Shown here: positions 5,092 through 35,689 of the stretch, piece after piece
How the letters are laid out: each line of letters starts with the position of its first letter
Position numbering within the stretch: position 1 is the stretch's first letter
Assembly: GCA_003427395.1 (NCBI GenBank)
Contig: BFEA01000021.1
Coordinates: forward strand, 2,244,897-2,308,896
Direction: 5' to 3'
From: Chara braunii
Lineage: Eukaryota; Plantae; Charophyceae
DNA: 64,000 bases
The notes under the pieces: generated by a model
Told to the model about the DNA's origin: nothing
Seen by the model: only the letters and a program-made list of their open reading frames with translations
The model's database searches: none
Translations under genes and position numbers: made by a program

Positions 5092-5142
<51 letters not shown>

Positions 5143-7488: not shown

Positions 7489-8231
7489 TGGAAAGCCAGA
7501 TTAAGCCAGATGTAATCTGGCGGGGTCCGCGTGTAAAAGACGAACGCCGCCGACGTGGCAGACGAGTTGTCGGTAAGACAAAGAACCCCGCAGATTAGCA
7601 TCAACACGACGTCGAGAGGAAGGGGGACTGGGAGGAGGAGAGAATGAACGAGCCTGCCGACGACCCAATATATAATTGTTTTTTTATTTTATCTTTTTTA
7701 AATGGAAAAGGTAGCCATCGGATTCCATCAGGAGATCAGCTCAGCTCTGTTTGACTATATAGTATAATTGTTTTTTTTTATTTTATCTTTTTTAAATGGA
7801 AAAGGTAAACGCAACCTTATCGTATCCATTGGATTCCGTCAGGAGATCAGCTCTTGACCTGTTTAATAAAAGTTAATTGTCGGTGCCACTCAGCATGGAC
7901 TACGTGATTTTTTTTAATTATTTTTTTATTTCTTATATTTTCCTTCTCCACTCTATCCTTCCTTGGTTGCCTCTCCCCCTTATTCTTGTCCTCCCCCTTC
8001 CCCCCTTCCCCCTGCAACAGCATGGGTCTATTCTTTCTCGTTCTCTCCCATCTTCTCTCCGACGTTCTCCCTTCTCTCCTTGCTTCGTTGTCGCTCCCTC
8101 CATTCTTCGCTATTTTTGGAGTCAAATTGAATTCAATGTAATACAATTTAAATTTCAATTCAAATTCAGTTCAAATTCAGTTCAAATTCAGATCAAATTC
8201 AGATCAAATTCAGTTTAAATTCAGATCAAAT

Positions 8232-10697: not shown

Positions 10698-12730
10698 CAG
10701 AGTCCCTTGACCGATGATACTGAACAAATTATCCACCTTAACCCGGGCTGCGCAGCCCAGGTTAGAGTGTGTTAAGTGGGATTAAACCGTTGAGTATCGC
10801 AGCCCGGGTTAAGGTGGATTATAACGTTCAGTATCATTGGTTAGGGGACTCTGCAGACTGTAGAGGAGGGTACAGCCTCTGCTGATTGATGAGTCGGTGA
10901 AACTCATCAGAGCCCCTCGCTTGTTGTTCTCTTCTCCCTTTCTGTCTACACTACACCAGGCAGTNNNNNNNNNNNNNNNNNNNNNNNNNNNNNNNNNNNN
11001 NNNNNNNNNNNNNNNNNNNNNNNNNNNNNNNNNNNNNNNNNNNNNNNNNNNNNNNNNNNNNNNNNNNNNNNNNNNNNNNNNNNNNNNNNNNNNNNNNNNN
11101 NNNNNNNNNNNNNNNNNNNNNNNNNNNNNNNNNNNNNNNNNNNNNNNNNNNNNNNNNNNNNNNNNNNNNNNNNNNNNNNNNNNNNNNNNNNNNNNNNNNN
11201 NNNNNNNNNNNNNNNNNNNNNNNNNNNNNNNNNNNNNNNNNNNNNNNNNNNNNNNNNNNNNNNNNNNNNNNNNNNNNNNNNNNNNNNNNNNNNNNNNNNN
11301 NNNNNNNNNNNNNNNNNNNNNNNNNNNNNNNNNNNNNNNNNNNNNNNNNNNNNNNNNNNNNNNNNNNNNNNNNNNNNNNNNNNNNNNNNNNNNNNNNNNN
11401 NNNNNNNNNNNNNNNNNNNNNNNNNNNNNNNNNNNNNNNNNNNNNNNNNNNNNNNNNNNNNNNNNNNNNNNNNNNNNNNNNNNNNNNNNNNNNNNNNNNN
11501 NNNNNNNNNNNNNNNNNNNNNNNNNNNNNNNNNNNNNNNNNNNNNNNNNNNNNNNNNNNNNNNNNNNNNNNNNNNNNNNNNNNNNNNNNNNNNNNNNNNN
11601 NNNNNNNNNNNNNNNNNNNNNNNNNNNNNNNNNNNNNNNNNNNNNNNNNNNNNNNNNNNGCAAAATCCCCTCACTGATTACACTGTAAATGATAATCTAC
11701 CTTAACCACAATCAAAGTAGACTATCACTCACCCACACCAGATGGAAAACTCTATATATATCATCGCATTAATATATATGTACTTTGCAATATATATACA
11801 TATATATATCTTCACAGAGAACTATGTATATTACACTGGCAGCAAAGATTGGCCAACGACTACCGACTTCCTCGGTCTACACATTATTTCCTGAATAGTT
11901 CGCGGGAAGCAGGGGGAAGAGAGCGTGGGGGGAGGGGGGAGAAGAGGAAGAAATGAGGAGCGTGGGGAGAGGGGGGAGAAGAGGAAGGGGGGGGGGGGCT
12001 GCTACCTTCCTTATATTCAGAACTATTACCTTTTTCGGTTTCCAGAACCAAAAGGTTCTGTTTTCTTAAATTTAAAAAAAAAAAAAAAAAAGAGCACTTC
12101 CCGTTAATTGGAACTCTACACGAAGACATCTACAAGCACATACCTTACTTCCTGCATACATAGTCAGATTCTTGTCAGATACATACGTGTCCGCGTACAG
12201 AAAATGCAATATATATCGTCACACCGTGTATCGGAGCGCACAGGCGAAAAAAGACAAACACAAAAAGGGAAGTGGGAGAAAGGAAAGCTCCGCCTATTCA
12301 TCACCTCTTATATGCCACACGATATTTAACTAACCGGCGCATTGGATGCATCTGGACAAACATACGTGCGTGCGTACATTAACATATCCAGTTGTTTATA
12401 CATGTACATATGTACGTGTATAAATGTACATGTATGTACATATACACGTATAAATGCATGCATCGTGGATGCATCTGGACAAACATACGTGCATGCATAC
12501 ATTACCATACCCATGTATTTACACGTATAAATGCATATACCGTCACATAGCTAACAGACTACCGGTAGGACCGCGTGTACGAGAGACACGGAGAGAAGGG
12601 ACAGGAGAGAGAGCGGGGAGAGAAGCAAGAGGACCAGTTTTCGTTTATTGTTTTTGGCGGGGGGGGAGGAAAGGGGGGGGGGGGGGGGGGGGGGGGGAGG
12701 AAGGAGTTGAATATACATGTCTGAGTGTAT

Positions 12731-16516: not shown

Positions 16517-17860
16517 GNNNNNNNNNNNNNNNNNNNNNNNNNNNNNNNNNNNNNNNNNNNNNNNNNNNNNNNNNNNNNNNNNNNNNNNNNNNNNNNNNNN
16601 NNNNNNNNNNNNNNNNNNNNNNNNNNNNNNNNNNNNNNNNNNNNNNNNNNNNNNNNNNNNNNNNNNNNNNNNNNNNNNNNNNNNNNNNNNNNNNNNNNNN
16701 NNNNNNNNNNNNNNNNNNNNNNNNNNNNNNNNNNNNNNNNNNNNNNNNNNNNNNNNNNNNNNNNNNNNNNNNNNNNNNNNNNNNNNNNNNNNNNNNNNNN
16801 NNNNNNNNNNNNNNNNNNNNNNNNNNNNNNNNNNNNNNNNNNNNNNNNNNNNNNNNNNNNNNNNNNNNNNNNNNNNNNNNNNNNNNNNNNNNNNNNNNNN
16901 NNNNNNNNNNNNNNNNNNTGTGTGTGTGTGTGTGTGAGAAAGACTCGGAGAGAAAGAAAGAAAAATTTCCAACCATGCACGCAGAGAGATAGAGAGAGCC
17001 TACTTTCATCGATAGGGTGAGCAAAATCGGAATGAATCTTCCACTAGAATATGAAAATATACACTGCTTTCCAACCATACACGCAGAGAGATAAAAAGAG
17101 GCTACTTTCGTTGATAAGATGAGCAAAATCGGAATCTTCCACTATAATATGGAAATATACACTGCTTTCCAGCCATGTGCGCAGAGAGCTAGAGACAGGC
17201 TACTTCCATCGATAGGATTTTCATGTTCTAGCGGAAGATTCATTCGATTTTTCTCATTTTTCATAGTTGTACCGGTTAGCAAGACATGATTTATTTTAGG
17301 AAATGTACAATTTACGGACTACTACAGGAGCACCCAAATTCATCCCACTAGAAACATTTCTACTCTATTTTTTTTTTCACGGCCTATAGTTGGGCAAGTA
17401 CTGATGGTTTAACGAACCGGCCCGTAGTCGTCTCCATCTGAATGGTGGGACTGGTATATGTGTCAAGTGTGCGCTCGACGGTACCCCCGCCGTCCTGGCT
17501 GTACCCCCATGCCCTGTGTGGCATTAGTAATTTCGGTCTGGCCGTAAAAGAGGTCAGATACGTCCAGGAAAGTCGTCATGTGAGTCGTCCCCATGTTCCT
17601 AACGGAAGATCTATCCTCATTTTGCACATTTGGTGAGTAGTGGAACGAGGCCCTAAATGAAGGGGGATGAGAATTCCAAATTGTTAAAATTTCCCTGCCA
17701 TCGCAGTCTGGTGAACAGAGGGGCGGCGACCGGGTGGGCTAGCGCCGACGTGGGAGGCTGACGCGCAGGCTAGGGCGTTTGCCTGCTATACCCATCCGAC
17801 TTCTGAAGGCTCACGGTGACCACTTTCTTTCGTCTACGAGAGCGAGGCTTAGGACAACAT

Positions 17861-18382
17861 CAACATAAAATTTTTCCAGAATTAAATATTCATTCTATAG
17901 TAAAATTACATTCTAAATCTCAAATTTTTATTCCATCTTAAAAAATGTCATTCCACTTTTTAAAATTTTCGTCTTACTTGAGAACTTTCCTTCCAAGAAT
18001 GGGGTGTCCCTTCTTATTTGAATAGCATGCTAAAGATGGAATGAAAGTCTGGATGAGTTCATGAAATATTTTAATTGGACTGTCATTCTAAGTAAGGGTT
18101 TTCAGTCATAAATAGGTTAATCCAATTTATATTAGAAAATATTTGTTGTAGTAAAATGAAAGTTTAATTAAAACATTTCATAAAGTCGTTCAGACTTTCA
18201 TTCCATATTGAACAAATAGATATAGTTGGAATGAAAAACTCATATTTAGACGGGAACTTGTCAAATAAAACTGGAAATTTTAGAATTGGACAAACATTGG
18301 AATGATAATTTATAAATATGAAGGATTTTTTTTTTATTGAATGTTTTTTCAACTTTCATTTCTCGTGGGAATTTTTCTATTG
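17861..18382. mobile_element. ~520-bp non-autonomous DNA transposon (CAAC...TTG ends, 2-bp TSD)
   Basis: Imperfect TIR CAACATAAAATTTT(T)CC / GGAATTTTTCT(A/G)TTG with TSD AT/AT. Closely similar copy at 60073-60593 with TSD TA/TA. Confidence 0.8.
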
Positions 18383-20380
18383 ATGGAGTTTCACAGAGTC
18401 TGCTTATATGCATTGTTAGTGGGTGTTGGGTGTTGCGGAGCTGCAAGTTTTTTTTTTCTTCTCCGCCTCATAGACGCTATATAGAGCTATGACCAGGGCA
18501 TTTTGAGGAGTGTTTTATAATTGTTTCGCTCACAATTTTAAATAAGCATGAGAGATCACCTGGGTCTTTCGAAGCACTGTATTTTTTTGGCCTAGCGTGA
18601 TTGTTTTGGAACGTTTGTGGTCTTCTCATTTATCTCCCTAGGCGTTTTTTTATGCCTTTATGCCTACTAGAGTTTCGTCGTCTGGTTCTTTTGTGTATTT
18701 ATTCGTGAATTATCTAGTTGTCGGCTGCTTCGTTTGGGGTTTCCCGTTTAGGGTCCGTTTATGCTCATTTTTCTATCTCGTGACTGGTTAGCTTCTTTGA
18801 CTGGGCTCGTTTTTTATTCTGCTTTCGTTTCATCGTTGTTGATTTCTTGACTTTCATTAGTTTTCTCTCTACGTGGAAAGAGAGTGGATAGTTGTGAAAT
18901 TGTTTGATAATGGAAGGTGCATGTTGTTTTGGCAAGGCTAGTTGCACTAAGATGTTCCCTGTTCGGAAGGAGAGTATACCTCAACTATTGATTTTTTTTT
19001 CCATGTTGGTCGTTGAGACAAATTTCCCTGTTTTGATTGTTCGACATAGTGGTAATAGACGTTTAGTAGGGTGTTGATAAAGTTGTAGATCCTTGTGCGT
19101 TTCTCATTTATTGACAGTTTGGTGGAATTGTGATGGTCGTGGTGACGTATGTTTTCGTTAGGTTAATTTTTGAACGCTCTTTTCCATAAACTAAATTCGC
19201 TTTGTTCATATTTTATTATCATTTAGGTATGATAGTTGAGAATTTTTGTGTTCTTATCTTTGTGTGTTTCTGATTCATTAACGGTATGGTGAAATTGTGA
19301 TGGTCGTGGTGGTGTAGGTTCTCATTTGGTTAATTTTGGAATTTCATTTTCGTAAATTGAACTCACCCTGTTTGGGGCTTAAGGTCTGGTAATTAGGAAT
19401 TTCTACATTCTCATAGTGGAATTTGGTTATAGGTAGGGTAGTGTAGGGCTTTGCATGTGGGCAATCTTGTAGATTTGTTTTTTGTGAATTGACTTGGTGT
19501 GTTGAAAACTGAGGTATGTTAATTAAGAGTCTCAAAAAACTTGTTTTTGACACTAGAATTCGGGAGGTTATGCTTTGTCGGTGTGAATACCCTTACAAGG
19601 GTATTCGCCCATATTTTTGCAACTTGCACAAGTTGAACCTGAGATGGTATATAAGGTAGGTATTTACGTAAGTATTGCGCAGACCGTGACCGAATCCCTG
19701 TAGCTAGAATAACGGGCGCATGCGAGATAAGGTTAGAAGGTTTGTGAACGTGCGAGTTTAAGGCGCGAGTGATTTTTATCGTGTACCGACAGTCAGTATC
19801 CATGATTTTTTTTTATTATTTAAAATTATGATTAAAGCTTAGTTTTAGTTTGGTTATATGTAGGAACGGGCCGTAGGTAGAAGCTGACGCCAGCACAGCA
19901 AAGGTGCCGACTTTGGCGATTGGAAGCCGACCGGTAAGCCAAAATGTAGTTAAGGGGCACCTTGGTAGAACCACGTGGTGGGTACAACCTGCTTATATGA
20001 AATTTCGCTAGTACTAATACCAGTCGTGGGCCTAACACTATCAGTTACAGTGTTGGACTTATATACAATATATTTGGGGATCGAGGCCAGCGACCGACGA
20101 CGATGGAGCGTTAGAGTGAATGAAAAGATTGAGGGATTGATGGTCCACGGGGCTATCTCCCTTGGTTTTGTTGCCGAACTACCCGTGGGTCCGGTCGGTA
20201 GGACCAAGAGGGGCACCGATGGTATTTTCTCCTCAAAAACATTGTTTTCCTATGTTCGTATTTTTTATATTTTTACTTTTATTTTATTCCTTAGTTATTT
20301 TAGTTGTCGGTCTCGTTTCTGGGGCACAACACGAATATTGGTACTAGGACTATTTGCGGGTTCCAGCGAGTCTAACTCAG

Positions 20381-20647
20381 TTGAAACGCGGGCTGAGGAG
20401 TTCAATGTGCATGTTAGTTGGTGGGTGTTTAGCCTATATTGTGAGAGGGTTGAGTGTGATCATGCCTGTTGGGGCCCGAAAGCTGGTGAACAATTCTTGG
20501 GCAACGCGGGCCAAATGAAACTCTGGAGGATTCTTGCGACGATACTGATGTGCAAATCGTTCGTCGAACTTAAGTATAGGGATGAAAGATTAATCAACCG
20601 TCCAGTAGTTAGGTTCTCTCCAAAGCTACTCAGGATCATTGGAGTTG
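20381..20647 (+). pseudogene. Degenerate nuclear LSU (25S/28S) rRNA-derived segment
   Basis: TTGAAAC..GAGGAG, GAGTGTGATCATGCCTGTTGGGGCCCGAAAGCTGGTGAAC, GAAACTCTGG, GATACTGATGTGCAAATCGTTCGTC, GTATAGGGATGAAAGATTAATC and CTCAGGAT are collinear with the conserved LSU domain II. Confidence 0.85.
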
Positions 20648-21832
20648 TCGAAGCTACAAATGTTAATCTGCGTTAAGTACTAGGAACATATGCGTTGGGT
20701 GGAGGTCGATTGATCGATCGAAAGAGAAGGAGTGAACCTAAACGTGGATCCGAGCCAAGTACATTCGAAGACGATGATGACGTAAGGAAGGAGGAAAGAT
20801 AAGGATGGCGAAGTAGAGATGGCATAACTAACCCGATCCTTAACAAAACCAGTCAAACTTAAGCCTTAGGGCGGAATGAGGGTTTTGACGATGGGCGAGT
20901 AGAATGGCAAGGGTAGATTTGGTGTTAGAGTGATGACTAGGAGAATATGGTATTTAGGGGTTGTGTGGGTGTTACGAAGGATATCGGGAAGGTGACGGGA
21001 AGGACGGCACCAGCAGGAGGAAGAAGAGCAACAACTGAGAAGAGGTACGCACTTGGTAGTTGTGTGAGGGACAAGTATTGAGAGGGGAGTGTGTCTCCCC
21101 ATGTTCTAGCAGAAGACTCACTCTCACTATGCACATAAAAAGAACGGCGGAGTAAGGCCACGAACGATTGTTGGAGACCGATCATCTTACAAGCATCTCC
21201 CGTTGCTAGTGGAAGATCCCTTCCCACGCTGCGGTTGAACAACGGGCACGATAGCAAAATAGGTGCATGCGCGTGCGAAGAGGGAGCTGAGCATGACTCA
21301 CTTGGTTACGCCACTGAAATCGCATGGGCTTTTGCACCGTGCAGAGGTGTATCTTTCCAATTTTTAGTGGAAGATTCATCCTCATTTGCGCATTTGATGG
21401 GCGGTGGAGAGAGGTTGTTGTAGCACACCTTTCCTCGTCATCGTGACAAACGCCTTGATCCTAGTGTTCATCGCCGTGGCGCTGTTGCTCCGGTGATCGG
21501 GCTGTTATGGGCGGTCGTATTCATTTGGTGGTGTATCTTTCCATGTTCTAACGGAAGATCCATTCCCATTTTGTACATTTGGTCAATGGTAGAGCGCGCC
21601 AGTGTTGAGGTGCTGATTGCCTGAGGACCGGCTTCACCAGCGTGATCGTAGTGGGGCTCCTCACTCAGACGTCGCTCTATGTTACATTTGTCATCCTGGT
21701 GGCTATTGGGATCTTGCCATTTGTAATAGTGCTCATTTCCAACGAGCAAGGGTGCTATGCTACGCTACGGGAGGAAGAACCATGATAGTAGAACGGGGGA
21801 GAAAATAGAGGGTGAGCAGAGGCAAGAATCAC

Positions 21833-21902
<70 letters not shown>

Positions 21903-23474
21903 ACGGGATACTTACCAGGTGCCTAGTCTTTGTAAACGTGGAAGTAAGTATGCCATCGTGTTGTACTGGCAGGCGAGCACCTGACCCGGTTATCAGTCAG
22001 GTGCATTGGAGAAGGGTGAGGCTTACGTGGGAGAAGATAAGGGTGAGGGGAATCGAAGAGAGGAGGTACTACCGAGGAGGCTACCGCTGATCACAGTGAC
22101 GGTCATAATTATTATTCCAATTTCAACATTGTTCACGATCATTATCGTGGTTTTGACCTCGTTCTGCGAAGTGCTCGTTAAGACAAGATAAAGATTGTGG
22201 GGTTTGTCCTCCTCGGTATCTAAATCAGTCTTTTTGTTATCATGTGTGTCACTTGGATACTGTTGCTTGATGTGCTGATGTTTCGGGTCGAGCTAGACTT
22301 TGCCATAAAATCGAGGTGAAGTCAAGTATAGATGGCGGGCAGGAAAGGTTGCTGCTAAAAGGGTGCTACCCGCAAGATTGAGGTTGTTCCCGTTCCTTCA
22401 TGAGTTACTGTAGGTTCCCAGGCCATTGCCATTATGTCCTTTTACTACTGCTACTGTCGGTGTTAGTAATTGATGTTGTTTACCAATTACGACCAGCAAC
22501 TACGGACTGATTGGTCATTTCCTTGGTGCTGTCATGGATGAGAGATCAATGTTTGTTGCTCCCTCACACCAGGGTTTGTTGAGTTTTGCTGCGTCGTTAT
22601 ATTGCGTTTGTTGTTGTGCATTATGTTGTGATTCCCTACAACTGATTTGCATGACTGACCTTGCTGTGCATTTGTTGTGCCTTTTGCCTCGTCAATGCTT
22701 GCAAATTATTGAACACACCGTCTCGACTGAGTTTTACAACTTTTTATTAGCATTTTTCAAATAAAGACGGGTGTAATCCTCTATTTGAACACAATCCTTC
22801 TATGTTGCGTAACGACGCCTTCGTCTGAAGTTGGAGTACAACGGCTTGAAGGTGTGATCAAGTTTCTGCAGGAGGGTCATTGTTGCCAAAGTGGAGAGTT
22901 GTGCATGTTGCTACACGATTTACGACATCGACTTGACCTAGACTAGCTGGCTTCTTACATGTTTTGGTCACCTTTGGGGGGCCCTCAAACGCGTCAAGAT
23001 ACCAAGGCCCTCTCGAACGAGTTGAGTTGTCCCCCTCTTCTCTCGAGAGTCAGACCTTTTTCTTTCTCCTCTTCTTAGTCCAAAGTCTAGTCTGAGTTCG
23101 GAGAGGAAGACCGCAACCCACAAGACCGCAGTAAGACCTTGTGGGAGATCCACCAGCCGATTGCAGAAGCTCCGTCGAAACTCAGGAGGAGTTATGGGGG
23201 TGAGGAACAATCTGGTATAACTTGTTATGTCTTGTGTGAACCCAATAATCTCTTAATCATTACACCTATTTACGCTGATTGCTCTGTATATGTGCATCCC
23301 TATGGATTTTGCTTTATTAAAAAAATAATTCAGAGTAAGTAAAGAGAATGCATTTCTAAAAAAATCATCTACTTTAGTATTTGAAATTCAGAATGAAAAA
23401 GATAAATTGGGGAAAGGTGGAAAAAATGTAGTTTTGCATGCGTTCATGGGGTTCCCTAAGGGTTAAACAACTTG

Positions 23475-24320
23475 AATGTGGCTGCGGTTAGGCCTAACCA
23501 CTTTGTTTATTCTATTTTTTTTTGCAAATAGACAATGTGGCTTCAGTCAGGTCTAATTCTTGTAATATTTATTGAGCTGTCTTCCTTACAACCTGACAAT
23601 GTGGCTTCAATCAGATTTCAAGTTGACTGTTGTATTGTCTTCTCCTCTTTGCAGTCACATAATGTGGTTTCAATCATGTCTGATTGCCATACCTCTGTAA
23701 TTGTGATTCGTGCAACTAGGCAATGTGGTTTCGATTTGGCCTAGCTGACCATGTTATGTCGTTATGTTCCTTACGACAACCAGACAATATGGTTTCAGTC
23801 AGGTCTGGTTGTTGTTCTTGTCATAATTTATCTCTTGCATAAAAATACGAGTTGGGTAATATGACTTAGGTCAGACGCAACTACTTGTTTTTTTCTGAGG
23901 GAGGTTTCGACTGATGACTATGTAATGTGGTTTCGGTTTGGTCACACACACAAAATAAGAATATGAAAATATAACCTTTTATATAAATATATCATACTTC
24001 TATTATTGAATAAAGTTAGTCAGACAACGTGACTTCAGTTTCGTCTCACTATCACAAAAAGGAAGAGAGCACTTAATTAAGAATATAATGTGTAACCAAA
24101 AACGGACTGAGCAATGTGGCTTCGGTTTCGTTCAACCTTAGTCTTCAAAAAATTAAAATGTTCAGATAATTATTACAACTTAAACATTAAACACTTGGCA
24201 GGGCTAGATAACGTGACTTCGATTTGGTATAGCGATCTGCCTAATGAAGAAAAAAGTAGTTGTGCCATTTGTTTGTGTATACAAAGACAAATGTTAAGCA
24301 ATGTGCTTTCTGTTTGACTT
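23475..24320 (+). repeat. Array of ~12 short conserved motifs (RACAATGTGGYTTCRGT..) with divergent spacers
   Basis: Motif period ~63 nt, then ~95 nt. Confidence 0.75.
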
Positions 24321-24594
24321 AACATTTTTATGCCATATGTAAGTTAGGGCGTTGGGGTTTATCCAACTGAGAGTAAATAAACTATTTATGTGATAAACAA
24401 CTTGGGATTTTTTGTGAGCGTACTTATTCATTATAGTGCGGACTTGCATGCGGTTGAATGCGAGCTCTACTTGTTCTAAATCTTGGTTTGGATAGGTAGT
24501 TGTTTTAAATGCTCGCAGTGTGGTGGAGCTATAAGAGTTAATTCAATTTTTGCATTCTCTGAGTTAAGTTTATTTATCATATTTGGCTTTATGT

Positions 24595-25150
24595 TTTAAA
24601 GGAAGTGCTACCCAATTTTTTGTAAATCCAAGGAGTTAGTCAAATTCAGTCCTTACAAAAATCAACTTTTGTCAAAGTTTCATATTTGGCTTAGTAAAAA
24701 ACTGAGAAACCTACTTTTACAGGGGAGGTGCTGTCCAATTTTTCAGTAAATCGAAGAGTTAGACAAAAATTAACTTTATTAAGTCAGAGTTACTTCTAGA
24801 TTTTGCATTTACTTTTGTAAAAATTTTCAAAAGACACCTATCTAGAGGGAGTGTTGCTAAAATTTATACAAATCTAAAAAAGTTAGTTAAATTTTTCCCT
24901 GACGAAATTCAAGTTTTATGTGACTTGGTGTAAATATGAAAAACCTACTGCTCTAAAGGAGATGCTGTTCAAATTTTTACCAAATCAAGGAGTTAGACGA
25001 AAAATTGACTCTATAAAATCAAAAACCACTTTCAGGTTTCATATCCAGTCTTATATAAATTATGCAAATACACTTTTCTTATGAAAAGCGTTGGTGAAAT
25101 TTCCAAAAATCTAGAGTAATTATAATATCTTAGAACTTGAAGAGTTTGAC
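24595..25150 (+). repeat. ~120-bp tandem subrepeats (5 units)
   Basis: GGGAGTGCTGCCCAAATTTT..AAATC.AAGGAGTTAG at ~24601, 24724, 24848, 24958 and 25085. Homologous array at 33045-33545. Confidence 0.8.
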
Positions 25151-25872
25151 AGTCTGCCCTTGCTTAGAGGAGATACTGTCGAACTTCCTGACATTTTCAA
25201 ACAGGTATTAGAGGTGAGGTAGGAAGGGAGTAGTATTCCATACTCCCTCAAGCATAGGTTGGGCACTGACTTGTGATGTATTGAATGTCATTTTCATTCA
25301 TATTGTCTCGTGACTTGACTAACTTCGAGTTGATTCTACGAGGATCATCTTCTATTATCTTCTGATATCAGGTCGGTGTCCAACTTAACTCTAACTCATT
25401 CTCACGACTCAACCTTGGACCTTAACCCCTGTGAGTTAAAATGTTTCTTAAAGTTTTTACCCGGACTTTTATTAAATGACAATTTAAAAAAAACTGAGTT
25501 TTTTCTTTTGGAAGGATGGACAAAGGTTGGGGTTTGTGTGAATAAGGCAAGGGGTGTGAGTGTAGAGAGTGGTTGAAGTTGACCCCGTGTAGTTTGTAGT
25601 GTGTCGATGTTGAATCTTTGGTGTGATTGCATTTATGTTTTATGAGTCGAAGTCCGGGTTTGACTTTGTATAGGATCATGTGTATATTTTGAAGGAAATC
25701 ATATTGTGATTGTGAGTGTGATCGCCTCGTGTTTTATAACCTCGTTATATTTATATTTTGTATATACGCACGGTCTACTTTGATAGTTCGTAAGGATTGA
25801 ACAATTTGTGTCGAGAGAAAATGAAGGTTTTTTGTTTTTTTTATTTTTTTTTAATATTATATATATATATAT

Positions 25873-26724
25873 ATAGTTGAACGTTGAGATCCGTGGTGGT
25901 TGTCAAAATCAAAACCCTTTAACCTGTTTTCATACTGCCGAAGATGGAGCCCCGCTTTTAGGATTAGAGGTGTTTGGCCGCGACTAAGGGTTGAAGCCCG
26001 TCTACCCCTCCTCTCCGCAATGTGCAGAAGAGGGCATGTCTCGCAATCGCACTTGCGATTGTCTAATGTCAAGAGATTAACTCTTCAGGACGTGTGTCAG
26101 CCGACACTTGAGTATCGAATGTGACCCTCAAAATTATTGAGGACCGCATGGTTGTGGGCACCACATAGTACATCATCATTTCGACCTCTTGTGTATTCAT
26201 GCATAGATGGTCGATGTGATAAAGTCTACGTCGCCACAATATTTATTCATAGTCTCGTGCGCAACACCCACCTAATTCTTTCATCGAAAATTATAAGTCA
26301 AATGTGAACCAGGGACTATGAACGATTTACGTATGAAGCTTGATTTTTGTTTTTATGAAGTGTGTCACGTGATTAGATTGACCGTCTTAGTCGACTGACG
26401 TCAAATCGCATTCGGGAGATCAACGCCTCAGGCAACGATTCGCGCACGGGTCCGATTTGGGCGTTATCCGCACGTACCTCCTATGCTACAGCGAACGAGA
26501 AACGCCCTCGACCAGGCCATCGCTGCGATTTCATATGAAAAACTTCTGTATATGGTTTGGTAGCTTAGCGGGGATACGCCCACCTAAGGGATGGTGACAA
26601 CTCCTATGGATGGAGTACCTCTCGTAACTCTATCCTTTCGTAGGGGTTCACGAAAGGTATGGCTGACGCACTCCACCGGAGCGCCGACACTCTGTGACAG
26701 TGCCCGGCAAAATCCTGCGTGACG
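25873..26724 (+). ncRNA. Putative large structured RNA block (copy 1)
   Basis: Diverged paralogue at 34298-35207 with conserved motifs and compensatory changes in several hairpins. Confidence 0.55.
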
Positions 26725-28001
26725 TGGTCGAGAGACTTCCCTTGAGGGACTAATACATTTGACAACATGGTGTTTTAAGTTTTTGGAATTTTAGTTTTTT
26801 TGGTTCGTAACTATAAGGGCAAAACTCTGCTTATGAATGAATTTCTCTATGATTGATCTAAGCTTTAGGTACTAGGCCCAATTATAATAAAAATTTCAAG
26901 ACGTGAAAAAAAAAAAGATAAAATTCCCTGCCATCTCAAAGAATTACAAATCGCTCACTTCTTTGGAAGCCTTCAGACCACTCTTTGATTACCCATGAAG
27001 TTCGTCAGAATTCCAAAATATTTTGAATTACCTTGGGTCCGTCAAATATATCGGAATTTAAAACCATTATGAACTACCTTTGGCACATCAGTCAATTTAT
27101 AGGCCTCGCTCCACTACTCACTAAATGTGCAACATGAAAATGAATCTGCAGCTAGAACAATGAGAAGATAAATCACCATATTTTTCATTTTTTTTGCGTG
27201 GGGGTCAGTAGTGGAGCGATGCCTTATAAATTTATTTGGGCATTTTTATTTTTATATATTTTAAACGGGCCCTGTGTTCAAGGCTTACATCAATCAAGTA
27301 ACAAGTCAACTCCATGTTAAGAGCCACCGACCTCGAACCCTAACCTCAGGTTGAGCCTCGCTCCTGCAGTAACTCACATCCGAGAATTCCCCCTTAAAAA
27401 ATAAAAAAACTACACTATATTCTCCTCTTAATTTGTTTTTTAACCTTTCACTACCAATGCACCTAAAAAACTACTTGTCAGCACAAAATCCCTAAAATCC
27501 CTAAAAGGTCTACTCAGCTATATAAAAAACTCCTAAAAACTACACAAGAGTCATTTCATGGGTCAGCGGTCAGCAACCCATTTGTCTTCCTCGCAGCATA
27601 ACACACCCTCATCACAACCGTATCGGACTAGCAAGATAACTTGCATACATTCATAATTAGGTTGCGAACATGCACCAAGAGTCGAGACCAACATGTACTT
27701 ATACGGCCGAACCACACCAAGTGTCCCATCTCACGAAGCAAGGGCATAGTAGTTTGTATAGGGGGTTCAGCGAACGGGTTCAGTAAGGCACACAAGTGGC
27801 ATGTAAGAGAGTCATAAGGTCAACTACCATTGATCGCATGTACCTACCTGACCTTACTACCATTAGCACCCCCGCCATGTAGAGATAACTCAAGTCGGTA
27901 TAACACTGCTAATGTGGGTGGGAGAGGGGAGATGAGGGAAGGAGCAGCAATTGGCCAATGCTCGTCCGTGACGATACTGGCTGACCCCTAGCCAATTTAG
28001 A

Positions 28002-28073
28002 CCGCAAGTAGCTCAGTTGTTAGAGCAAAGGAATAAAAATCCTTATGTTAGTGGTTCAAATCCACTTCCACTA
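28002..28073 (+). pseudogene. trnF: Degenerate mitochondrial-type tRNA-Phe (NUMT)
   Basis: GTAGCTCAGTTG-TTAGAGCAAAGGA[ATAAAAA]TCCTTATGTTAGTGGTTCAAATCCACTTC resembles plant mitochondrial trnF(GAA). The anticodon loop and acceptor stem are damaged. Confidence 0.7.
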
Positions 28074-28388
28074 AATAAGCAACCGACTATGCTTCAAGTT
28101 AACCCTAGTGCCTACAACCGTTGTCCAATCAGGTTACCCCCGACTAGATGATAGGAGAGTGATGATCATGAGTGATAAACAATGAGGTAGAATTGTGGGA
28201 GTAGGGATGTGCCAAGGAGAAATAATGAGAGTTGAAAATCAGTAGGGAGTCTCATAAGGAACGATGATCTTTACATACCATATGGATAACCAAATGGACG
28301 ACTACCTAGGGTGATCGTCATATTTCTAGCATCCTACCTCTAAAGCAACCTGTTTTTTTTTTCAAAAAAAAGAAAACAAAAACATTCA

Positions 28389-28462
28389 GTATCCTCCTAA
28401 GAACATGCGGTACTATAATACTATACCCAACATACAATATCACAATGTTCTTAGGAGGATAC
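28389..28462. mobile_element. Small Stowaway-like foldback element
   Basis: 18-bp inverted repeat GTATCCTCCTAAGAACAT / ATGTTCTTAGGAGGATAC that includes TA. Confidence 0.5.
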
Positions 28463-29335
28463 CCCACCAATTGACTGAAGTCGTCAAGTCGGAAACTACT
28501 ACAAGGGGCTGCTCATATGCACCCCGTTAGTAGGGCTCACCTGTTGACGTTAAAAAAAAAAAAAAGGAGGATATGAATGCTAAGGGGCTCACCATAAGGC
28601 CGCAACAAGACATCAGAAGACCACCATGTCAGATTGGACACAAGATTGAATGGTTAGGCTCACCACTACACACAGTCTTGGCAATGCTTCACTGCATGCT
28701 AAGCCTTGTCGGATTGCTGCACTTTTTTTCTAGCGCCACCCAGCCATTGTGTGTCGAGCCCTGAAAATTTCGGAGTTGGCAACTTGCGATCTTCTACAAG
28801 GTTGGGACCATGTACTGGCGGCTTAAGAATGCCAAGCTGCAACCTGCCATCTCCAAGTGGAAAAACGCACTGGTGACTTGAGTGTGCATCTTCACACGCA
28901 TAAAATAACTTCTTTTGTTTTCCTTTTTTTCAAACCACCAGTTCACCCTGTCGTACCAAAGGGTATTTGGCGTGTTTTCAGCAAGTTACGCCAGTGCAGC
29001 CTCGCTCGTCCGACAGCACGTACGTGAGAGGAAGCTTAGGTCCTCGTCTGGGTGAGCGGCGCGCGCGGGGTATTGATGGCGAGGCACAACCATGCGCAGC
29101 CTGGGTGTGCGAGGCGTCGCGGACCAGTGGGACGCGAGGCGTTCATTTTTATTTCTATTGTTTATCTATTTATCTGCTATTATTTCTTTTCTAAGGTATT
29201 TAGATCGGTGATCGGTTTCGAGGCCGACAGGCCTGGCTCGGCTACTAGAGTGTCGGACACGGGTGGTCATCGCGGTAGTCGAGGATCTTGAGCACGCGTT
29301 TTCTGGGCGGGCCCGCTAGAATTTTTGTATATTTG

Positions 29336-29615
29336 GGATACTGGCGAAAAATTCCTAGCCCACCGGCATTGAAGCACATACCGAAGAGGTCAATGTGCGT
29401 GGAAGTGGTGGGGTCAGTGGTCGTGGCTTCCCTCGTTTCCCACTTGGAGAGCGTCGATAGCCTAAGGGGAGAACATTTCGACTGGGCCATGGGGCTGCAG
29501 CCCGAGGGAGGCGAGGGTTGTAGTGGGCGCGCCACCCACCGTTTGAGGTGAAACGTTTAAAGTGTGAGCATGTCCGTTTGGACCCGCAAGGGCGGTGAGC
29601 TATGCCTGGGCAGGG
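29336..29615 (+). pseudogene. Highly degenerate LSU rRNA-derived segment (copy 2)
   Basis: GGATACTGGCGAAA, TTGAAGCAC, AGTGTGAGCATG..GGACCCGCAAG..GGTGAGCTATGCCTGGGCAGGG correspond to the same LSU region as 20381-20500. Confidence 0.7.
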
Positions 29616-32329
29616 CTTTTTGGGGACCGGTGGGAGGTTGTCGCGGGGTTGACTATGTGGTGGGGCTGTCCCAGTGGCTTTTCCCATGGGACTCCTCCCA
29701 AACTTTGGCTTTCGAAGTTCGTATTTGACTACTGGCTACTGTCATCAAGATCTGCACCAGGGACCGTCCCGCTTTGGCGCTTGCTGGAGGTACCGATGGT
29801 CGGGACCGTCCCGCTCTGGCGCTTGCTGGAGGTACTGATGGGCGGGCCAGTCCCCTTCTACCCGTCGTGGCCTAAGAGTTGTCGTGACGGCCTAGCACAG
29901 GCCGCGGCTCAGCACAGTCCACTTCCGCTGCTGTTAGGCTCGGTGGCGGCGTTGTTACCTACTCCTTGGCAGGGTCTTGATCTCCACGACCACCGCCTGC
30001 TGTCTGTGCGGTTTATCATTGTCAGGCATCCAGGCACTAGCGTACAGTTGACACCGGGCAGGGCGAGGTCGGAGGTCCCAGTGTGAATACACTCTGGGCA
30101 AGGTGAGGCCGCAGGCACTTTGGTGGAGGCTCCGAGAGATACAGACGTGCTAATCGAGCCAGATCATAGCTGGCTCTCCTCGACACTCCCCCTAAGACAT
30201 TTAGAGTTTTACTGAGCTCTGCCCGACCACTGTGGGATCAGCCGCTGCCGTGGAGCTGCGCTAGCAGTGGAAGAGCGAACCAGGATGGAATTCCGCGCGG
30301 GATGCATGCAGGGCGGAGGAGAGCGAAGAGGGCAGAGGAGAGCAAAGAGGAACGGAGGAGACAGCAGGGGGAGCGGAGCAGTAAGAGAGCAGGTGGAGGA
30401 GAAGAAACGGGAAACAAACCTGGACGTGATCCCCGACAAGGTTTGTGCGAAAACGGAGCAAGCTATAGCGGAGCAAGCGAGAGAAGAAGGGAGAACGAAT
30501 ATCTCCCTCGATCCGCGACCAAATCGAGGGAGGGAAGAGTCGGTTTGGGGGTTATGATGGAGGGCGACTTCAAAGGTGAGGTTAGTTTTAGTGATAAGGT
30601 AGTAGAGAGAGAGATTAGTAGAAAAGTTGGTGCGCGGGAGATGGCGGAGCGAGGGAAGGAGAATAAGGAAAATGGCATAGCTTAGTCGATTGTGGGTGGA
30701 ATCGGGCAAGGGGGGGCTCGATTTGGAAGTTTTGGGCCCGAGCGAGTCTATCAGTAAGGTTAGTTTTGCTAAAAGATTAGTAGGTTAGGAGATACGGAGA
30801 AAGAGAAATGTGCTCAGCTATGGCGGGGGAAGAGATCGAAGGAGTAAAAAATGGAGAATTCTACTTGAGTCCTTGTGAAACCGAGCGAAGGGAGGCGCAA
30901 AGTAGGAGAGTCGAGGTCGGGCGAATCTGATGGCGGTGTTAGATAAAGGCTTTAGTGGTTAGTTTCTGTGGGTTGTGATGTATGGTGTGCGCGGTGTGAA
31001 GGTAGCGCGGGTGCACGTGGAAGAGAAGAGGACAGCGGAGTGAGTGAAAGTGGTCGGGATTCGAGCCATGTGTACTTAAATGACAGGAAGGGAGGGATCA
31101 GAGAAAGGATTCGGACGGATGTGGACGTAGGGACGGACTGCGTTCGGTCAAAGCAAGAAGGAAAAGAAGGATGTAAAGCGGTATTCACCTCGAATAGCTG
31201 ACGATGCGAGATGAATCGAATGATGAACTGTAACACCCGACTGCTTCGCTGTTGCGTGGTTGGGGCAGACTAGCAGTGGGGTTGTGGCCTGACTGTGGAT
31301 CGCCAAGGAGCGGAAGAAGCCCCATTTGCATCAGGGTGGTCAAGATTGTTGACTGGAGATATTGATACTGCGGCCACCACTGATCATGGTTGTCATGAGA
31401 GAACTGCTGCCAAGTTTTGGTCTGGTGGAGCTAGGAGAAGCAGTTGCTGCCATGTCGGAGTCTCGGTATTTGCTGCTGCTGTTGCTTTTTGAGTTCACAA
31501 TGCACCTTGCTGTGCACAACTGCGGTGTCTTGACGCTGCGTACGACTGTTGTGGGGGCTATGATTTTTTGAAAGTCGTTGCGTTTCCCCTGAGCTTCGAA
31601 TAGAGCACGAGGGTGTGTTCTATTTGAATGCAGCCTTTTCTAGGTCGTGTTACTGCAGTTTAGTCAGAAGAAGAAGTTGTGTGACGTGGGGAAGTGGTCG
31701 GATTTTGCAAAAAGGATTACCATTGCGATCTGGAGGATTGTCAGAGGGTCGTAACTCCGCACTTGGCTGCATTTTGACTTCGAGTTGGGCCATTTTATTG
31801 CGTTTATTGGCCACCATTGCGGGACTCTCAAGCGCTTGAAGGAATCAAGGCCCTCTCACGCGAGTCTGAGCGCACCTCCCTTGTATCTGAGTGATTTAAC
31901 TTTTCTATTTCTGCCCTTCTTACTCTAAGTCTGATCCTGGTGACGAGAGGAAGGTGGCAAGCGGGCTTGCAACCCGTAGGACAGCAGTAAGACTCTGTAG
32001 GGAGTTTGCCCACCGATTGCGTTCTGTCGGAACTCAGGAGGAGTTCTGGAGGCAGGGAACCGAGAGGTAAATGTTTCCTCCTCCTTCTGTAAACCCAATT
32101 ATAACCCTCATCTGTACATCTTGCTATGATTGACTGAGTGAACTGCATGCATCCCTACTTTGACTTTCAGTTTGACTTCAGGACATAAACCAGACTTAAT
32201 AAATGAATTATGTGCAAATTTAGTTTCAATTTTTTGACTGACAACAGATTGTGGGATTGCATCTTGGGGAAGGTTGGGAGGAAGACAGTTTTGCTTGTGT
32301 CTGACTGGGTCAATCAAAGGCTGAGCAAG

Positions 32330-32770
32330 TCTCCATAAATTTGGGGAAACCCAGTACTGTATTTATTTTTTTGGTTGCCTAGAGAACCAGACATGTTCCA
32401 TAAGTTTGGGTGGTTTTGTTGCTCTGACTTGCGAGGGTTGACTGTGATTGACTTTCCAAGGACCAAGCATGTTCCATAAGCTTGGGTGGCTTGGTCGCCT
32501 TGTTTACTTTGGGTTTTCTTTCAGTTCCTTTGGTTATGAATAAAGAGGCCTGAGAATGTTCCATAAGTTTGGACGGCTCAACCTCTTCCTGCTTTGGTTT
32601 TAAAAGAATGAACCAGGTCGAGGACCAGACATGTTCCATAAGTTTAGGTGGTCTTGGTCCAAATGCCATGCACATGCTGGAACCAAAAGGCTATAACTTG
32701 GCTATACTTTATTATTATTCTATCTACGAACAAGCTAGTCAGACAATGTTCCATAAGTTTGGGTGGTCTG
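32330..32770 (+). repeat. Array of ~6 motifs (CATGTTCCATAAGTTTGGGTGG) with divergent spacers
   Basis: Motif at ~32331, 32392, 32468, 32556, 32630 and 32745. Confidence 0.8.
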
Positions 32771-34297
32771 ACTATAGCTTATCACAAACTAAAGAGAGTA
32801 TTAATTAAGAATAAACTTGTGGTAAGAAGGGGCAGGCTGGATCTTGAGCTAAAGATGATCGATTCAGTTATATGCTACCTTAAAAGACTAAGTGCAGATA
32901 ATTATATAAAATTGAGATACTTAAACAGTCCAGGACGACTAGGGTAACATAGTCATATGCTCAAAGAAGAGAAAGGTCAATTTCTGCATTTTCTGGGATT
33001 TTTTGTTATACTTGGCTTTGTATAAATTTTGGTTAAGCTACTTTCTCTACGGGAAGCGCTGCCAAAATTTCTACAAAACCAAGGAGTTAGTCCGATTTTG
33101 TCTTTTCAAAGTTCAACTTGTCTGACTTTTATACATGACTTCGTAAAAATCTGGAGCATCTCCTTTTCTAAAGGGAGTGCTGCCCGAATTTTTGCTAATT
33201 CAGGGAGTTAGATACAATTGAACTTTGAGAAGTCAAAGCCATTTTAAAATTTTGAACTTAGTTTTGTATGAAACTTGAAATAACATTTTTCTTAAGGGAG
33301 TGTTGCCAAAAGTTTTGCCAATCTAAGGAGTTAGTTAAATTTGATCTTTGTTGAATTCATGTTTGCTCTGGGTTCATGTCTGACTAGAAAAAATCTGGAA
33401 GACCTTTTTTTATAAAGGGAACGCTGCCCAAATTTTTGTTAATTCAGAGAGTTAGATACAATTTGACTTTGGAAAGTTTAAGATTATTTTTGTTTTCATA
33501 TTCGGGTTGTACTGCCGAAATTTTCTTAGTGTAGAAGAGTTAGATTATATTTCGACAGGTGGCGATTCTGGTAATCCACTCTGTATGCGGGAGATTTTGC
33601 CATAGGTCTACCTTTCTTGGGTATTGACTTAGAGATAGACCTAGACTTGGTTATCAAGAGAGTCTTGAGTAAGAATGTGCTATGGAGATTTATTCCCCGT
33701 ACACTGATGATTTAACTTGGACATTGACCTGTCTTATGATACATGTCTTCTCTGAACATTCGATCCAGGATCTGGATTAGATTCAACTTGATCCTACAAG
33801 GATCATCTTCTGTTATCACTGATAACAAGTTGGTTGGTTGATCGCCGACTCGTCGGCTCACGACACAACTTTGCTTACACCTGTACCTCAACTTGATTGC
33901 CTCAACCCTGAGATTTTGATATGTTTCTTTGAGGGTTTAAACCAAACTTCTTTCAATGACCATTATAAAGAACTTATGAGATTTATGAAAAATTGGACTA
34001 TGACTGGGGCTTGAGTGTGTAAGGCGTGGTGCGAGTTAAAGGGAGCAGTAAAGTTGACCATATTGGTGCATGGCAATGTGGCGTTCGTCTATGTCTGTGT
34101 TTTATACAGGTTAGTGTCTTGGAGCCTGTGTACAACCCTTACTTTGGAGGCAGTGAGAATGACAACCACGTAATGCACGATCTGCATACTTGATGGGTTT
34201 ATGTTTCCCCCTTCTTCTATTTTATTTCGAGTTCTGTTTGGATATATGAGTGTTGGATGTTTATTTATATACTGATTGGTTTTGCTTGTTAATTTTT

Positions 34298-35207
34298 ATA
34301 GTTGGACGTTGTAGTCTGTGGCAGCCACCAAAGTCAAACCCCTTCGAGACCCTGGATGAGAGAGTTGGTCTCCATGCAATAAGAGACGATTGCCATCATA
34401 GGTATGAACCTGTGTACCACCTAGTCTCCACAGGGTGCAGAAAAGGGTGTGGTTTTCAACCGCACTTGGCGGTTGTCCAGCGTCGAAAGATCAATCCCTC
34501 AAGGCGTGTGTCAGCCGACACTTGAGTGTCGAATGAGACCCTCGAGATTAACGAGGACCGCATGATTATGGACACTGCATAGTACGCCATCATTGCGACT
34601 GCTTGCGCATTCATGTATTGCTAATCGATATGAGAAGACTCTGCGTCCACGCGGTTTTATACTAAGTCTCGTACGCGATGCCTATCCGATTTTCGCATCG
34701 GAGAAGTTATGGGATGGCTACTAAGGGACTAGGAGTGTTGTCGCGTTGTTTGTTCTGAGTCGTTCTGTATATATACGTGTGCGTGCGTGTTTAACTTTTA
34801 TGTTTTTAGAGTGGTGTACGCGTGGTGTGTGGGATGCGTCCTAGTCGACCGACGACGGGTCGCGTTTGGGACTTCAGCCCCCCAAAACGTCGGATCGTGT
34901 GTGGGTCCGATAGAGGAGTAAAACTGCGAGTACCCCCTATGCTACAGCGTACGAGAAATGCCCTCGGCTGGTCCACCTCTGCGATCGCAACTGATTAGCT
35001 TTCGTACTGTGGACTGGTAGCTCGGCGGGGATACGCCCACCGAAGGAAGGTGACAACTCCCGTAAGGTGGAGGTAAGTCGTGCCTCACGTAGACCCTATT
35101 CTGTCGTAGGGGCCTGCGAGAGGTATAGCTGACGCACACGGTCGGAGCGGCTTGCGGAAACTCCATATGTCTTCGCGACGAGGATTAAAACCAACTCCTG
35201 CGTGACG
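34298..35207 (+). ncRNA. Putative large structured RNA block (copy 2)
   Basis: Paralogue of 25873-26724. Confidence 0.55.
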
Positions 35208-35689
35208 CGGCCAGGAGGGTCCCGCCCTGCCTTGTGTGGTGCCGGACCGATGCGCTCGACAGGTCACCCGAGCCTAAGTTAAGCTCTTATCAATATATCC
35301 GACAAGAGTTTGTCAATTTAGGTCTGGGTCGTAGTGAACGTGGAATATCACTATAAAACATCTCAATTATAGGCTCGCGAGTCTTGTAAGGTGACTTTCT
35401 CAACTTGGGTTTGTGCGCACTCGTACAATCATGAGGCGATAATATTTGCATAAGTTCTTCTCCCGACTCTTCCTCCTAATTCTAATTATATGACAAATTA
35501 TATTGTAGTGCATGTTGGACAGTACAAAGGCAGCGACTTAATGTTTTGGAGACCGTTGTAGTGGAGATGCAAGTTCGTTATGATGCTTGTTACAACAAAA
35601 GTGTTTGTTGTACAATAAGTGGTATGAAATCAAGCAACAACTTAATGTTTTTTAGATCATTGTAGGGGAGATGAAACTTCGTTATGATG

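Follow-up and report, generated by a model that had tools for sequence, protein, structure and literature searches.

Probable nesting of a complete Gypsy-type LTR in a short A-tailed retrocopy of Chara braunii

Closest described systems

A length of 1.5 kb is typical of retrocopies made by L1-type elements. The interval analysed here, 9,216 bp of Chara braunii DNA at positions 17703-26918 of the window (the whole stretch under analysis, 64,000 nucleotides), resembles L1-mediated retrocopies in its AATAAA signal followed by poly(A), its 17-18-bp duplication, its TT/AAAA target, its non-coding nature and the one-off, low-copy character of its sequence outside the LTR described below. It is unlike them in that the copy appears to be broken by later insertions, and in that no source candidate was found, which makes a comparison of spliced and unspliced forms impossible. 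The likeness to SVA elements is superficial: the interval is non-coding, contains internal tandem units and an LTR-derived part, and shows a duplication of about 17 bp as well as AATAAA with poly(A). In the SVA family, however, both ends are common to the copies, whereas the head and tail of the present interval occur in no other copy that we found.

The largest part of the interval is comparable to the LTRs of Ty3/Gypsy elements, with which it shares TG...CA ends and a short terminal inverted repeat; in three 5' LTR copies elsewhere in Chara a PBS-like site follows 2 nt past the LTR, and one of these (at locus L008) adds a gag with a CCHC motif, a protease and the start of an RT. A further likeness is the variable middle part of the LTR, in which fragments of host RNA have been captured. 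This copy is unlike other Ty3/Gypsy LTRs in having no flanking 4-6-bp duplication. Typical plant LTRs are far shorter than the 7.2 kb found here or the approximately 8.6 kb, gap included, of the LTR in another Chara locus (L010). Within Ty3/Gypsy, the Athila/Tat-like lineage is known for long LTRs and long non-coding regions, and its tRNA-Asp primer site lies a few bases downstream of the LTR (PMC1142308).

HERV-W processed pseudogenes end at the R-region poly(A) site in the 3' LTR, without U5. The interval would be similar to them (LTR-element RNA, A-tail, L1-type duplications) only if a read-through transcript had been copied, and it differs in that a whole LTR and 153 nt of unrelated sequence precede the tail, and in that the sequence upstream of the LTR is not recognisable internal sequence.

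The LTR and its relatives

We retrieved further copies of the repeated interior from the public Chara braunii assembly, and their comparison establishes both the Gypsy-type identity and the exact ends of the LTR. It is complete, extends from 19576 to 26764 on the + strand (as do the other parts of 17685-35261 described below), reads TGTCGG...TTGACA and accounts for 78% of the interval. The TGTCGG start is common to four copies (this LTR, L010:1006, L011:2854 and L011:14259), and the DNA upstream is unrelated. The ...GACA end is common to six copies with unrelated DNA downstream, the others being a second LTR of the window (at 35261), L008:1247, L008:8872, L010:9607 and L010:18728. Together the termini make up a short inverted repeat, TGTCG...CGACA, the 3' end being TTGACA in this copy, and collinear homology with those LTRs spans 4.8 of the 7.2 kb. 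No 4-6-bp duplication was detected around the LTR (TGCTT before, ACATG after; no match at nearby offsets either), which concerns the way the LTR arrived and leaves its identity as an LTR untouched. The LTR ends 153 nt 5' of the poly(A) and has the same orientation as the A-tail.

In three 5' LTR copies (L008:1250 and two in L010) the LTR is followed by GG and then by a PBS-like sequence of about 22 nt beginning with TGG, which may match tRNA-Asp. L008, the one copy read through, contains a CCHC gag ORF (1974-3554), a protease (3982-4332) and the start of an RT (4918-5250). The protease has a DTG motif and corresponds to Pfam Asp_protease_2 (E=8e-7). The homologues of the gag ORF are all Chara braunii proteins (84 of 84), some of which carry RT, RNase H or integrase domains. 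Over 81 nt, the two LTR ends of L008 (1166-1246 and 8791-8871) share 98.8% identity; the remainder of the 5' LTR is an assembly gap.

Several modules inside the interval are parts of this LTR: a ribosomal RNA fragment, hairpin arrays and a conserved 3' block that had looked structured. The first, at 20398-20691 in the variable middle, is a decayed piece of large-subunit rRNA (Rfam model positions 671-1449, gapped); it was not found in the LTRs of L010, L011 and L008, and the second LTR of the window holds a weak counterpart at 29561-29612. Eleven diverged hairpin units with the core AATGTGGYTTC occupy 23475-24317. The best-conserved part, identified from depth and alignments, is the 3' block at 25873-26764, whose copy number is very high: DNA word depth is 3,800-76,000 as compared to about 13 for single-copy sequence. 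The segment 21700-22899 is at single-copy depth, and no second copy of it was found at 85% identity or more.

The second LTR, at 28707-35261, is a diverged member of the same superfamily. Its 3' end is firm, while the 5' end is tentative, with only TTGTCGG aligning. It is merely 68-74% identical to the LTR at 19576-26764 and 77-80% identical to L008 and L010, whereas the LTR at 19576-26764 is matched by thousands of contigs at an identity of at least 85%; on the basis of this difference, the two LTRs of the window are separate insertions. What had been taken for an rRNA-derived module, a structured block of 850 nt and a paralogue with identical module order can thus be reread as LTR sequence. 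Conservation of these modules can stem from LTR function or recent amplification, and a new RNA system is not required.

The probable retrocopy remnant and its flanking marks

Apart from the LTR, the interval consists of about 1.5 kb of low-copy sequence (17703-17860, 18384-19575 and 26765-26916) and a MITE-like insert of 0.5 kb. The 5' head (17703-17860) is GC-rich, has no match in Rfam and has no counterpart in the second LTR of the window or in other Chara loci. The MITE-like repeat (17859-18383), nested in the retrocopy, is AT-rich, contains inverted arms and is 90-91% identical to 60070-60594. The body (18384-19575) is G+T-rich and non-coding and holds two 86-nt units (19089-19174 and 19256-19341). 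The 3' tail (26765-26905) is low-copy and U-rich, and is homologous neither to the Gypsy leader nor to 18383-19575. In the bin 26700-26899, which covers most of the tail, DNA depth is about 70, as compared to 76,000 in the preceding bin; in the DNA runs the depth of the tail is near that of the flank, which is low-copy, whereas the LTR block next to it reaches thousands.

Across about 490 kb of Chara DNA, a single weak match of 91 nt to the body was the only trace of head, body or tail. The tail and its poly(A) are missing from the adjacent second LTR and from five LTR copies at the loci retrieved. Two oligo-dT RNA-seq runs showed the locus to be silent. The interval had been described as free of recognisable RT, EN and gag, and this proved correct: Pfam searches of all its 76 stop-to-stop pieces of at least 45 aa detected neither RT nor EN, gag or integrase, and a tblastn search with 269 proteins of LINEs and Gypsy elements, a large share of them Chara braunii sequences, gave no match at E<=0.05. 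With 150 LINE proteins one match was obtained (E=0.09).

The marks of retro-insertion reported in the preliminary description were all found again. The interval is bracketed by a direct repeat, whose 5' copy (17685-17702, TAAAATTTCCCTGCCATC, 18 nt, preceded by TT) and 3' copy (26919-26935, TAAAATTCCCTGCCATC, 17 nt) differ by one extra T only. The match stops abruptly, with unrelated flanks on either side. AATAAA is located at 26886-26891, after a U-rich stretch and 14 nt upstream of a run of eleven A (26906-26916), and only the dinucleotide GA lies between this run and the 3' copy of the repeat. The left flank, ...TTGT/TAAAAT, provides the TT/AAAA context of an L1-type endonuclease target; it is low-copy (DNA depth about 49), and no repeat homology extends across the junction. 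Possible A-tailed LINE partners exist in the same genome: the window contains an RVT_1 ORF (56378-57091), a zf-RVT domain (41294-41536) and A/T-tailed LINE 3' ends, and the Chara protein P0159 bears Exo_endo_phos together with RVT_1. Target-primed reverse transcription by L1, as proposed earlier, therefore stands in so far as the marks fit and A-tailed L1-like LINEs are present, but not for 9.2 kb as one unit. The marks are real and go beyond chance, while such confirmation does not extend to the 9.2 kb as a single insertion.

Order of events and alternative readings

We consider it probable that the interval is an L1-type, A-tailed retrocopy of about 1.5 kb with later nested insertions, including the complete 7.2-kb Gypsy-type LTR. 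From the observed marks we infer that a non-coding RNA of about 1.5 kb with a poly(A) tail would have been the template, which an L1-type LINE would have reverse-transcribed at a TT/AAAA nick, leaving an A-tailed retrocopy within a target-site duplication of 17-18 bp. A giant-LTR Ty3/Gypsy-type retrotransposon would have inserted later, 153 nt 5' of the A-tail, and would now be represented by one complete LTR, probably a solo LTR produced by recombination or deletion; the MITE-like repeat would have come to lie 157 nt from the 5' end of the retrocopy. The order retrocopy first, LTR second, is likewise suggested rather than observed. In genomes so rich in LTR elements, nested ones are commonplace. 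The components are most likely of already known kinds, an ordinary A-tailed retrocopy and a Gypsy-type LTR, and not a new giant mobile RNA.

Some observations sit less easily with nesting. A simple nested solo LTR would be expected to keep its duplication, since the 17-bp repeat survived well. The absence of an LTR duplication implies either that a flank was lost, by deletion or inter-element recombination, or that the LTR was already within the RNA template. The sense orientation, which nesting yields half the time, is predicted if the LTR was transcribed with the rest. Neither an LTR-free copy nor a source of the 1.5-kb sequence turned up in the approximately 490 kb of Chara loci, where the join 19575/26765 is never seen intact. 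Furthermore, the two halves of the retrocopy have no detectable mutual similarity.

If the LTR was in the template, the whole 9.2 kb would be a retrocopy, L1 having copied in trans a Pol II transcript that crossed an entire sense Gypsy LTR and was polyadenylated at an AATAAA in flanking DNA, 153 nt past the LTR of the source locus; we regard this as unlikely. Such an origin would agree with the bracketing of everything by one duplication and one A-tail, with the sense of the LTR relative to the tail, with the missing LTR-specific duplication and with a G+T skew that is alike in body and LTR (0.56 over the whole insert as compared to 0.45 in the following spacer). However, as is well established, a length of 9.2 kb is extreme for an L1 retrocopy. 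A 3' LTR would moreover require the upstream 1.9 kb to be Gypsy internal sequence with a polypurine tract, but this stretch shows no pol or integrase similarity and no homology to the internal regions of L008, L010 and L011, and no purine tract was found adjoining the LTR. A solo LTR at the source would not help, as it would likewise be missing its duplication, and the single-copy segment 21700-22899 revealed no source or sibling at 85% identity or more. If true, this reading would mean an unusually long L1 retrocopy, and would show that in a streptophyte alga L1 mobilises read-through RNA of LTR elements.

It is improbable that the 17-mer beside the A-run is fortuitous and that no retro-insertion spans 17703-26918. 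In a control with random positions, isolated 17-mers (up to 1 edit) recurred within 12 kb at 0.6% of positions, and the window has about 66 A/T runs of 9 nt or more, so that about 0.4 such cases would be expected were the flanks average sequence in this repeat-rich window. About 970 windows of this genome were examined, among which rare chance cases are expected, and no empty (pre-insertion) site or source locus was found in the window or in about 490 kb of Chara loci. Against coincidence, nearly all control matches fall in diverged repeats, whereas the flank here is low-copy; by hand estimate, the chance for such a flank is about 5e-4 per A-run and 0.03 per window, leaving AATAAA and target context uncounted. 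Only this one of the A/T runs has a comparable repeat within 12 kb, and the repeat adjoins it within 2 nt, with a canonical AATAAA upstream after a U-rich stretch and a TT/AAAA target. All these marks combined, low-copy flank and adjacency to the A-run included, give about 1e-3 per window (hand estimate).

A dedicated family of giant (8-9 kb) non-coding retroposons moved by L1, with a common 5' start and an A-tailed end, is very improbable. Module order is the same in the second LTR of the window, copy number climbs toward the 3' end of the repeated part and coding capacity is nil, as such a family would have it. Nevertheless, the common modules make up an LTR with TG...CA ends, a PBS-like site follows three copies, and L008 contains gag, protease and the RT start. 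Copies sharing the 5' start and A-tail but flanked by their own duplications, as a family of this kind would require, were not found among the loci retrieved. Tail and poly(A) occur in none of the five other copies with a visible 3' end, all of which stop at the LTR terminus; other copies with TG...CA LTR ends had been named beforehand as a refutation of the giant RNA. The second LTR lacks the 5' head, and head, body and tail are missing from the other Chara DNA (about 490 kb). The description of a giant non-autonomous RNA of about 8.5 kb, possibly a new element or lncRNA class, is consequently not supported, 7,189 of the 9,216 bp being Gypsy-type LTR.

Just as improbable is that 19576-26764 and approximately 28707-35261 are the LTR pair of an old non-autonomous element with a 1.9-kb interior, the A-run and 17-mer being accidents inside it: they share orientation and lie 1.9 kb apart, and TGGTG is present 3 nt past the first LTR end, where a PBS would begin with TGG, but each is nearer to copies elsewhere than to the other (68-74% identity), the post-LTR sequence is not homologous to the PBS and leader of the family, and the outer flanks have no common duplication (TGCTT vs. 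GGTCA).

The result is mainly a correction: in a genome crowded with retrotransposons, what looks like a long "non-coding insertion" within a single pair of target-site duplications can be a short retrocopy enlarged by nested elements. As a by-product, the analysis established where the LTRs of a very abundant Gypsy family of Chara braunii begin and end, where the primer site lies and which genes the element contains; the LTRs of this family are unusually long (7-8.6 kb).

Ends and parts of the interval

The interval 17685-26935 is bounded by an 18-nt string (17685-17702) that recurs, minus one T, at 26919-26935, and both copies of this duplication are sharply delimited, the sequence outside them being unrelated on either side. 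The right copy lies 2 nt past the end of a run of 11 A residues (A11, 26906-26916), which is preceded at a distance of 14 nt by an AATAAA (26886-26891) and, ahead of it, by a U-rich stretch. The left copy starts with TAAAA and has TT before it, as in a TT/AAAA-type target. The marks reported in the preliminary description were all found, and we take them as a real signature of target-primed reverse transcription.

The left duplication copy is followed by a GC-rich head of 158 nt (17703-17860), an AT-rich MITE-like repeat of 0.5 kb (17859-18383, 90-91% identical to 60070-60594), a G+T-rich body of 1.19 kb (18384-19575), a complete 7,189-bp LTR of a Ty3/Gypsy-type family (19576-26764), a tail of 141 nt containing the AATAAA (26765-26905), A11 and the right duplication copy. 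The interior was confirmed to be devoid of recognisable retrotransposon genes: the longest ORF does not exceed 233 aa, Pfam analysis of all 76 ORF pieces of at least 45 aa gave no RT, EN, gag or integrase match, and 269 LINE and Gypsy proteins, including many Chara braunii sequences, gave no match in tblastn.

At E ≤ 1 over 17000-27500, Rfam returned only a decayed large-subunit rRNA fragment (20398-20691) and one sub-threshold miRNA-like match. Since no 18S, 5.8S or SRP match was obtained in this range, the supposed 18S-like and 5.8S-like parts and the SRP-Alu-like fold are without Rfam support. Eleven diverged units around AATGTGGYTTC, mostly within covarying outer stems, occupy 23475-24317 of the window LTR; they are unrecognisable in the second LTR of the window (the paralogue, see below) and form no SRP-like fold according to Rfam. 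The LTR contains the rRNA module, the eleven hairpin units and also a conserved 850-nt block.

A complete Gypsy-type LTR and its relatives

To look for other copies, we examined about 490 kb of Chara sequence from the surroundings of annotated retrotransposon proteins. Copies of the family were present in three C. braunii loci (L008, L010 and L011), while five other fetched loci (L001, L002, L006, L007 and L009) contained small motifs only and no family copy. Three more loci, which belonged to other organisms, yielded no copy of the family either. A conserved 23-mer had 0 matches in a metagenome scan, and a protein search for other copies with a 68-aa ORF of the high-copy block gave none. L008 contains the last 126 nt of the block (1123-1248, just past an assembly gap) and a 3.65-kb copy (5219-8872); its two LTR ends, of which the 5' one follows the gap, are 98.8% identical over 81 nt.

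When the 3' ends of the window element, the paralogue and the two L008 copies were aligned, homology was lost at the same nucleotide, after ...GACA, and the sequences beyond were unrelated; two further 3' ends in L010 behaved in the same way. The 5' start TGTCGG is common to window 19576, L010:1006, L011:2854 and L011:14259, with unrelated DNA upstream, and the two termini constitute the inverted repeat TGTCG...CGACA. Located 9 nt inside the 5' end is a perfect 10-bp palindrome (GAATACCCTT AC AAGGGTATTC), which is kept in four copies (including window 19585-19606, L010:1015-1036 and L011:2863-2884). Collinear homology of the window LTR to those of L008, L010 and L011 extends over 19576-20387 and the greater part of 22756-26739; the sequence in between (20388-22755), rRNA fragment included, is largely private to the window copy.

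In L008 (after position 1248) and in both L010 copies, the LTR end is followed by GG and then by a PBS-like site of about 22 nt starting with TGG, which may be a primer site for tRNA-Asp. ARAGORN detected no tRNA gene in the fetched loci with which the site could be compared. In Gypsy elements of the Athila lineage a tRNA-Asp primer site lies a few bases beyond the LTR (PMC1142308). Downstream of the site, L008 has a 526-aa CCHC ORF, then a protease of the aspartic type (Asp_protease_2 in Pfam, E = 8e-7) and then the beginning of an RT. The homologues of the CCHC ORF are all C. braunii proteins (84 of 84), many of which are named retrotransposon gag by the source and some of which carry protease, RT, RNase H or integrase domains. 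These sharp ends, shared at 5' and 3', together with the PBS-like site and internal genes of the other copies, indicate that window 19576-26764 is one complete LTR.

The stretch L008:1123-8872 appears internally deleted, running from the 5' LTR end through the PBS-like site, gag, protease and about 110 aa of RT into the middle of the 3' LTR, and L011 shows a related arrangement of gag, protease and RT start. A U6 snRNA-like sequence is found inside the L011 LTR (L011:4386-4488, plus strand, Rfam 48 bits); a better U6 match lies in the window at 2266-2379 (minus strand, 62 bits), beside a T-run.

The family, as represented by window 19576-26764, L010:1006-9607, L011:2854-9643 and L008:5219-8872, has very long LTRs, of 7.2 kb in the window and about 8.6 kb in L010 with its assembly gap counted in. 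Longer plant LTRs are not known to us. Literature searches for Chara braunii turned up no specific account of its mobile elements or of the LTR family, for which the exact ends, the primer site and the internal genes are added here.

The paralogue (about 28707-35261, 5' end tentative) lies 1.8 kb downstream of the element and is collinear with it (20453 to about 26765 vs. 29561-35262, 68-74% identity). The homology ends about 150 nt ahead of the poly(A), and no A-run is present at that place in the paralogue. The paralogue is a second LTR and not the pair-mate of 19576-26764, their divergence being the reason for rejecting that both belong to one element. Thousands of contigs match the window LTR at 85% identity or more; the paralogue shares 77-80% identity with the L008 and L010 copies. 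Its tentative start has no 10-bp palindrome. AGCCT, a candidate duplication around the paralogue, was not accepted, its sole recurrence being displaced by an unexplained 9 nt.

Abundance and transcripts

Coverage over 21300-27299 was taken from the contigs of two DNA runs and from the raw reads of two oligo-dT RNA-seq runs. DNA word depth was 12-18, i.e., single-copy, at 21700-22899, reached up to 3,000-27,000 in islands at 24100-26299 and peaked at 74,000-77,000 at 26300-26699, then fell to about 70 at 26700-26899, where most of the tail lies, and to about 49 in the bin after that (mostly flank). Therefore, the 3' block belongs to a very abundant repeat, which does not include the A-tailed end. 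The best-conserved 3' block reaches about 5,000 times the single-copy depth in the DNA runs. RNA reads were confined to the repeated parts, mostly with less than 90% likeness, and therefore derive from copies elsewhere; no reads of the two RNA-seq runs fell on the tail or the unique parts, so that the locus is silent in these samples.

The preliminary description had proposed a giant non-autonomous RNA of about 8.5 kb, possibly of a new class, retrotransposed in trans by L1, whose other copies should share the A-tailed 3' end. The L1-type retro-insertion is likely. The giant-RNA or new-class part is not likely, because in every other copy examined the repeated interior stops at TG...CA LTR termini, the ends which that description had named beforehand as contrary to its reading. 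The interval is probably an ordinary nested retrotransposon structure.

Assembly of the interval and neighbouring repeats

The most economical reading, and probably the right one, is that an L1-type retrocopy of about 1.5 kb was inserted first and that the MITE-like repeat and a Gypsy element, of which one LTR is left, would have entered it later. Retrocopies of the L1 type are typically of about this size, and elements nested in one another are commonplace in such genomes. Nesting is weakest at the LTR junctions, which show no 4-6 bp duplication (TGCTT vs. ACATG): either the LTR lost one flank, through a deletion or unequal recombination, or the RNA template already contained the LTR. The latter case is the main rival reading, in which a transcript running through the LTR would have been retrocopied over the full 9.2 kb; this reading predicts the sense orientation observed and fits the missing duplication. 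We consider it unlikely, given that the 1.9 kb upstream of the LTR shows no pol similarity and no homology with the element interiors in L008, L010 or L011, that no polypurine tract abuts the LTR, that a solo LTR at the source would equally lack its duplication, and that 9.2 kb is an extreme length for an L1 copy.

It is similarly improbable, if not slightly more so, that the duplication and the A-run coincide by chance. Isolated 17-mers with at most one edit did occur at 0.6% of random control positions, yet these came from diverged repeats, unlike the low-copy flank at the insertion, and among about 66 A/T runs of at least 9 nt in the window such a repeat within 12 kb was found at A11 only. 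The remaining readings are each very improbable.

The head, body and tail had no other copy, and the intact join 19575|26765 was not seen, in the about 490 kb of Chara DNA. The head is not similar to the 5' head of the paralogue (score 29; shuffles 23.5 ± 3.6), nor is the tail homologous to the retrocopy body (z = 1.1) or to the Gypsy PBS/leader (z ≤ 0.2 for L008, no signal with transition-tolerant scoring). A paralogous empty site was not recovered in the window: the joined flanks gave no match crossing the junction and matched only a short, very common hairpin motif of 58-60 nt on both sides (17591-17653 and 27102-27162). This motif, which occurs in both orientations and at very high copy number (DNA depth 8,000-27,000), lies on either side of the insertion site and is also found inside the LTR (21526-21600), at no fewer than 8 other window sites, and in L001 (70360-70480) and L007 (2698-2760, 39627-39699).

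A-tailed L1-like LINEs are present in the window. Their remnants at 53270-57500 (minus strand, RVT_1 at 56378-57091) and 40339-41536 (minus strand, zf-RVT at 41294-41536) have T-runs at their low-coordinate ends and share a 3' end of 150-280 nt that is also found at 46057-46343, 48352-48500 and 49880-50033. The window RT ORF has its best matches among C. braunii proteins (58% and 41% identity), and loci from GCA_003427395.1 carry the same repeat families as the window. Assembly gaps (N runs) stand beside CA/GA microsatellites at 10965-11659, 16518-16918, 43165-43319 and 52925-53268, and ORFs spanning these gaps are artefactual. At 28454-28573, a retroposed insert of about 100 nt ends in A14 (28552-28565) and is flanked by the 8-9-bp direct repeat AGGAGGATA, and a tRNA-like sequence (28009-28066, Rfam 44 bits) lies upstream of it.
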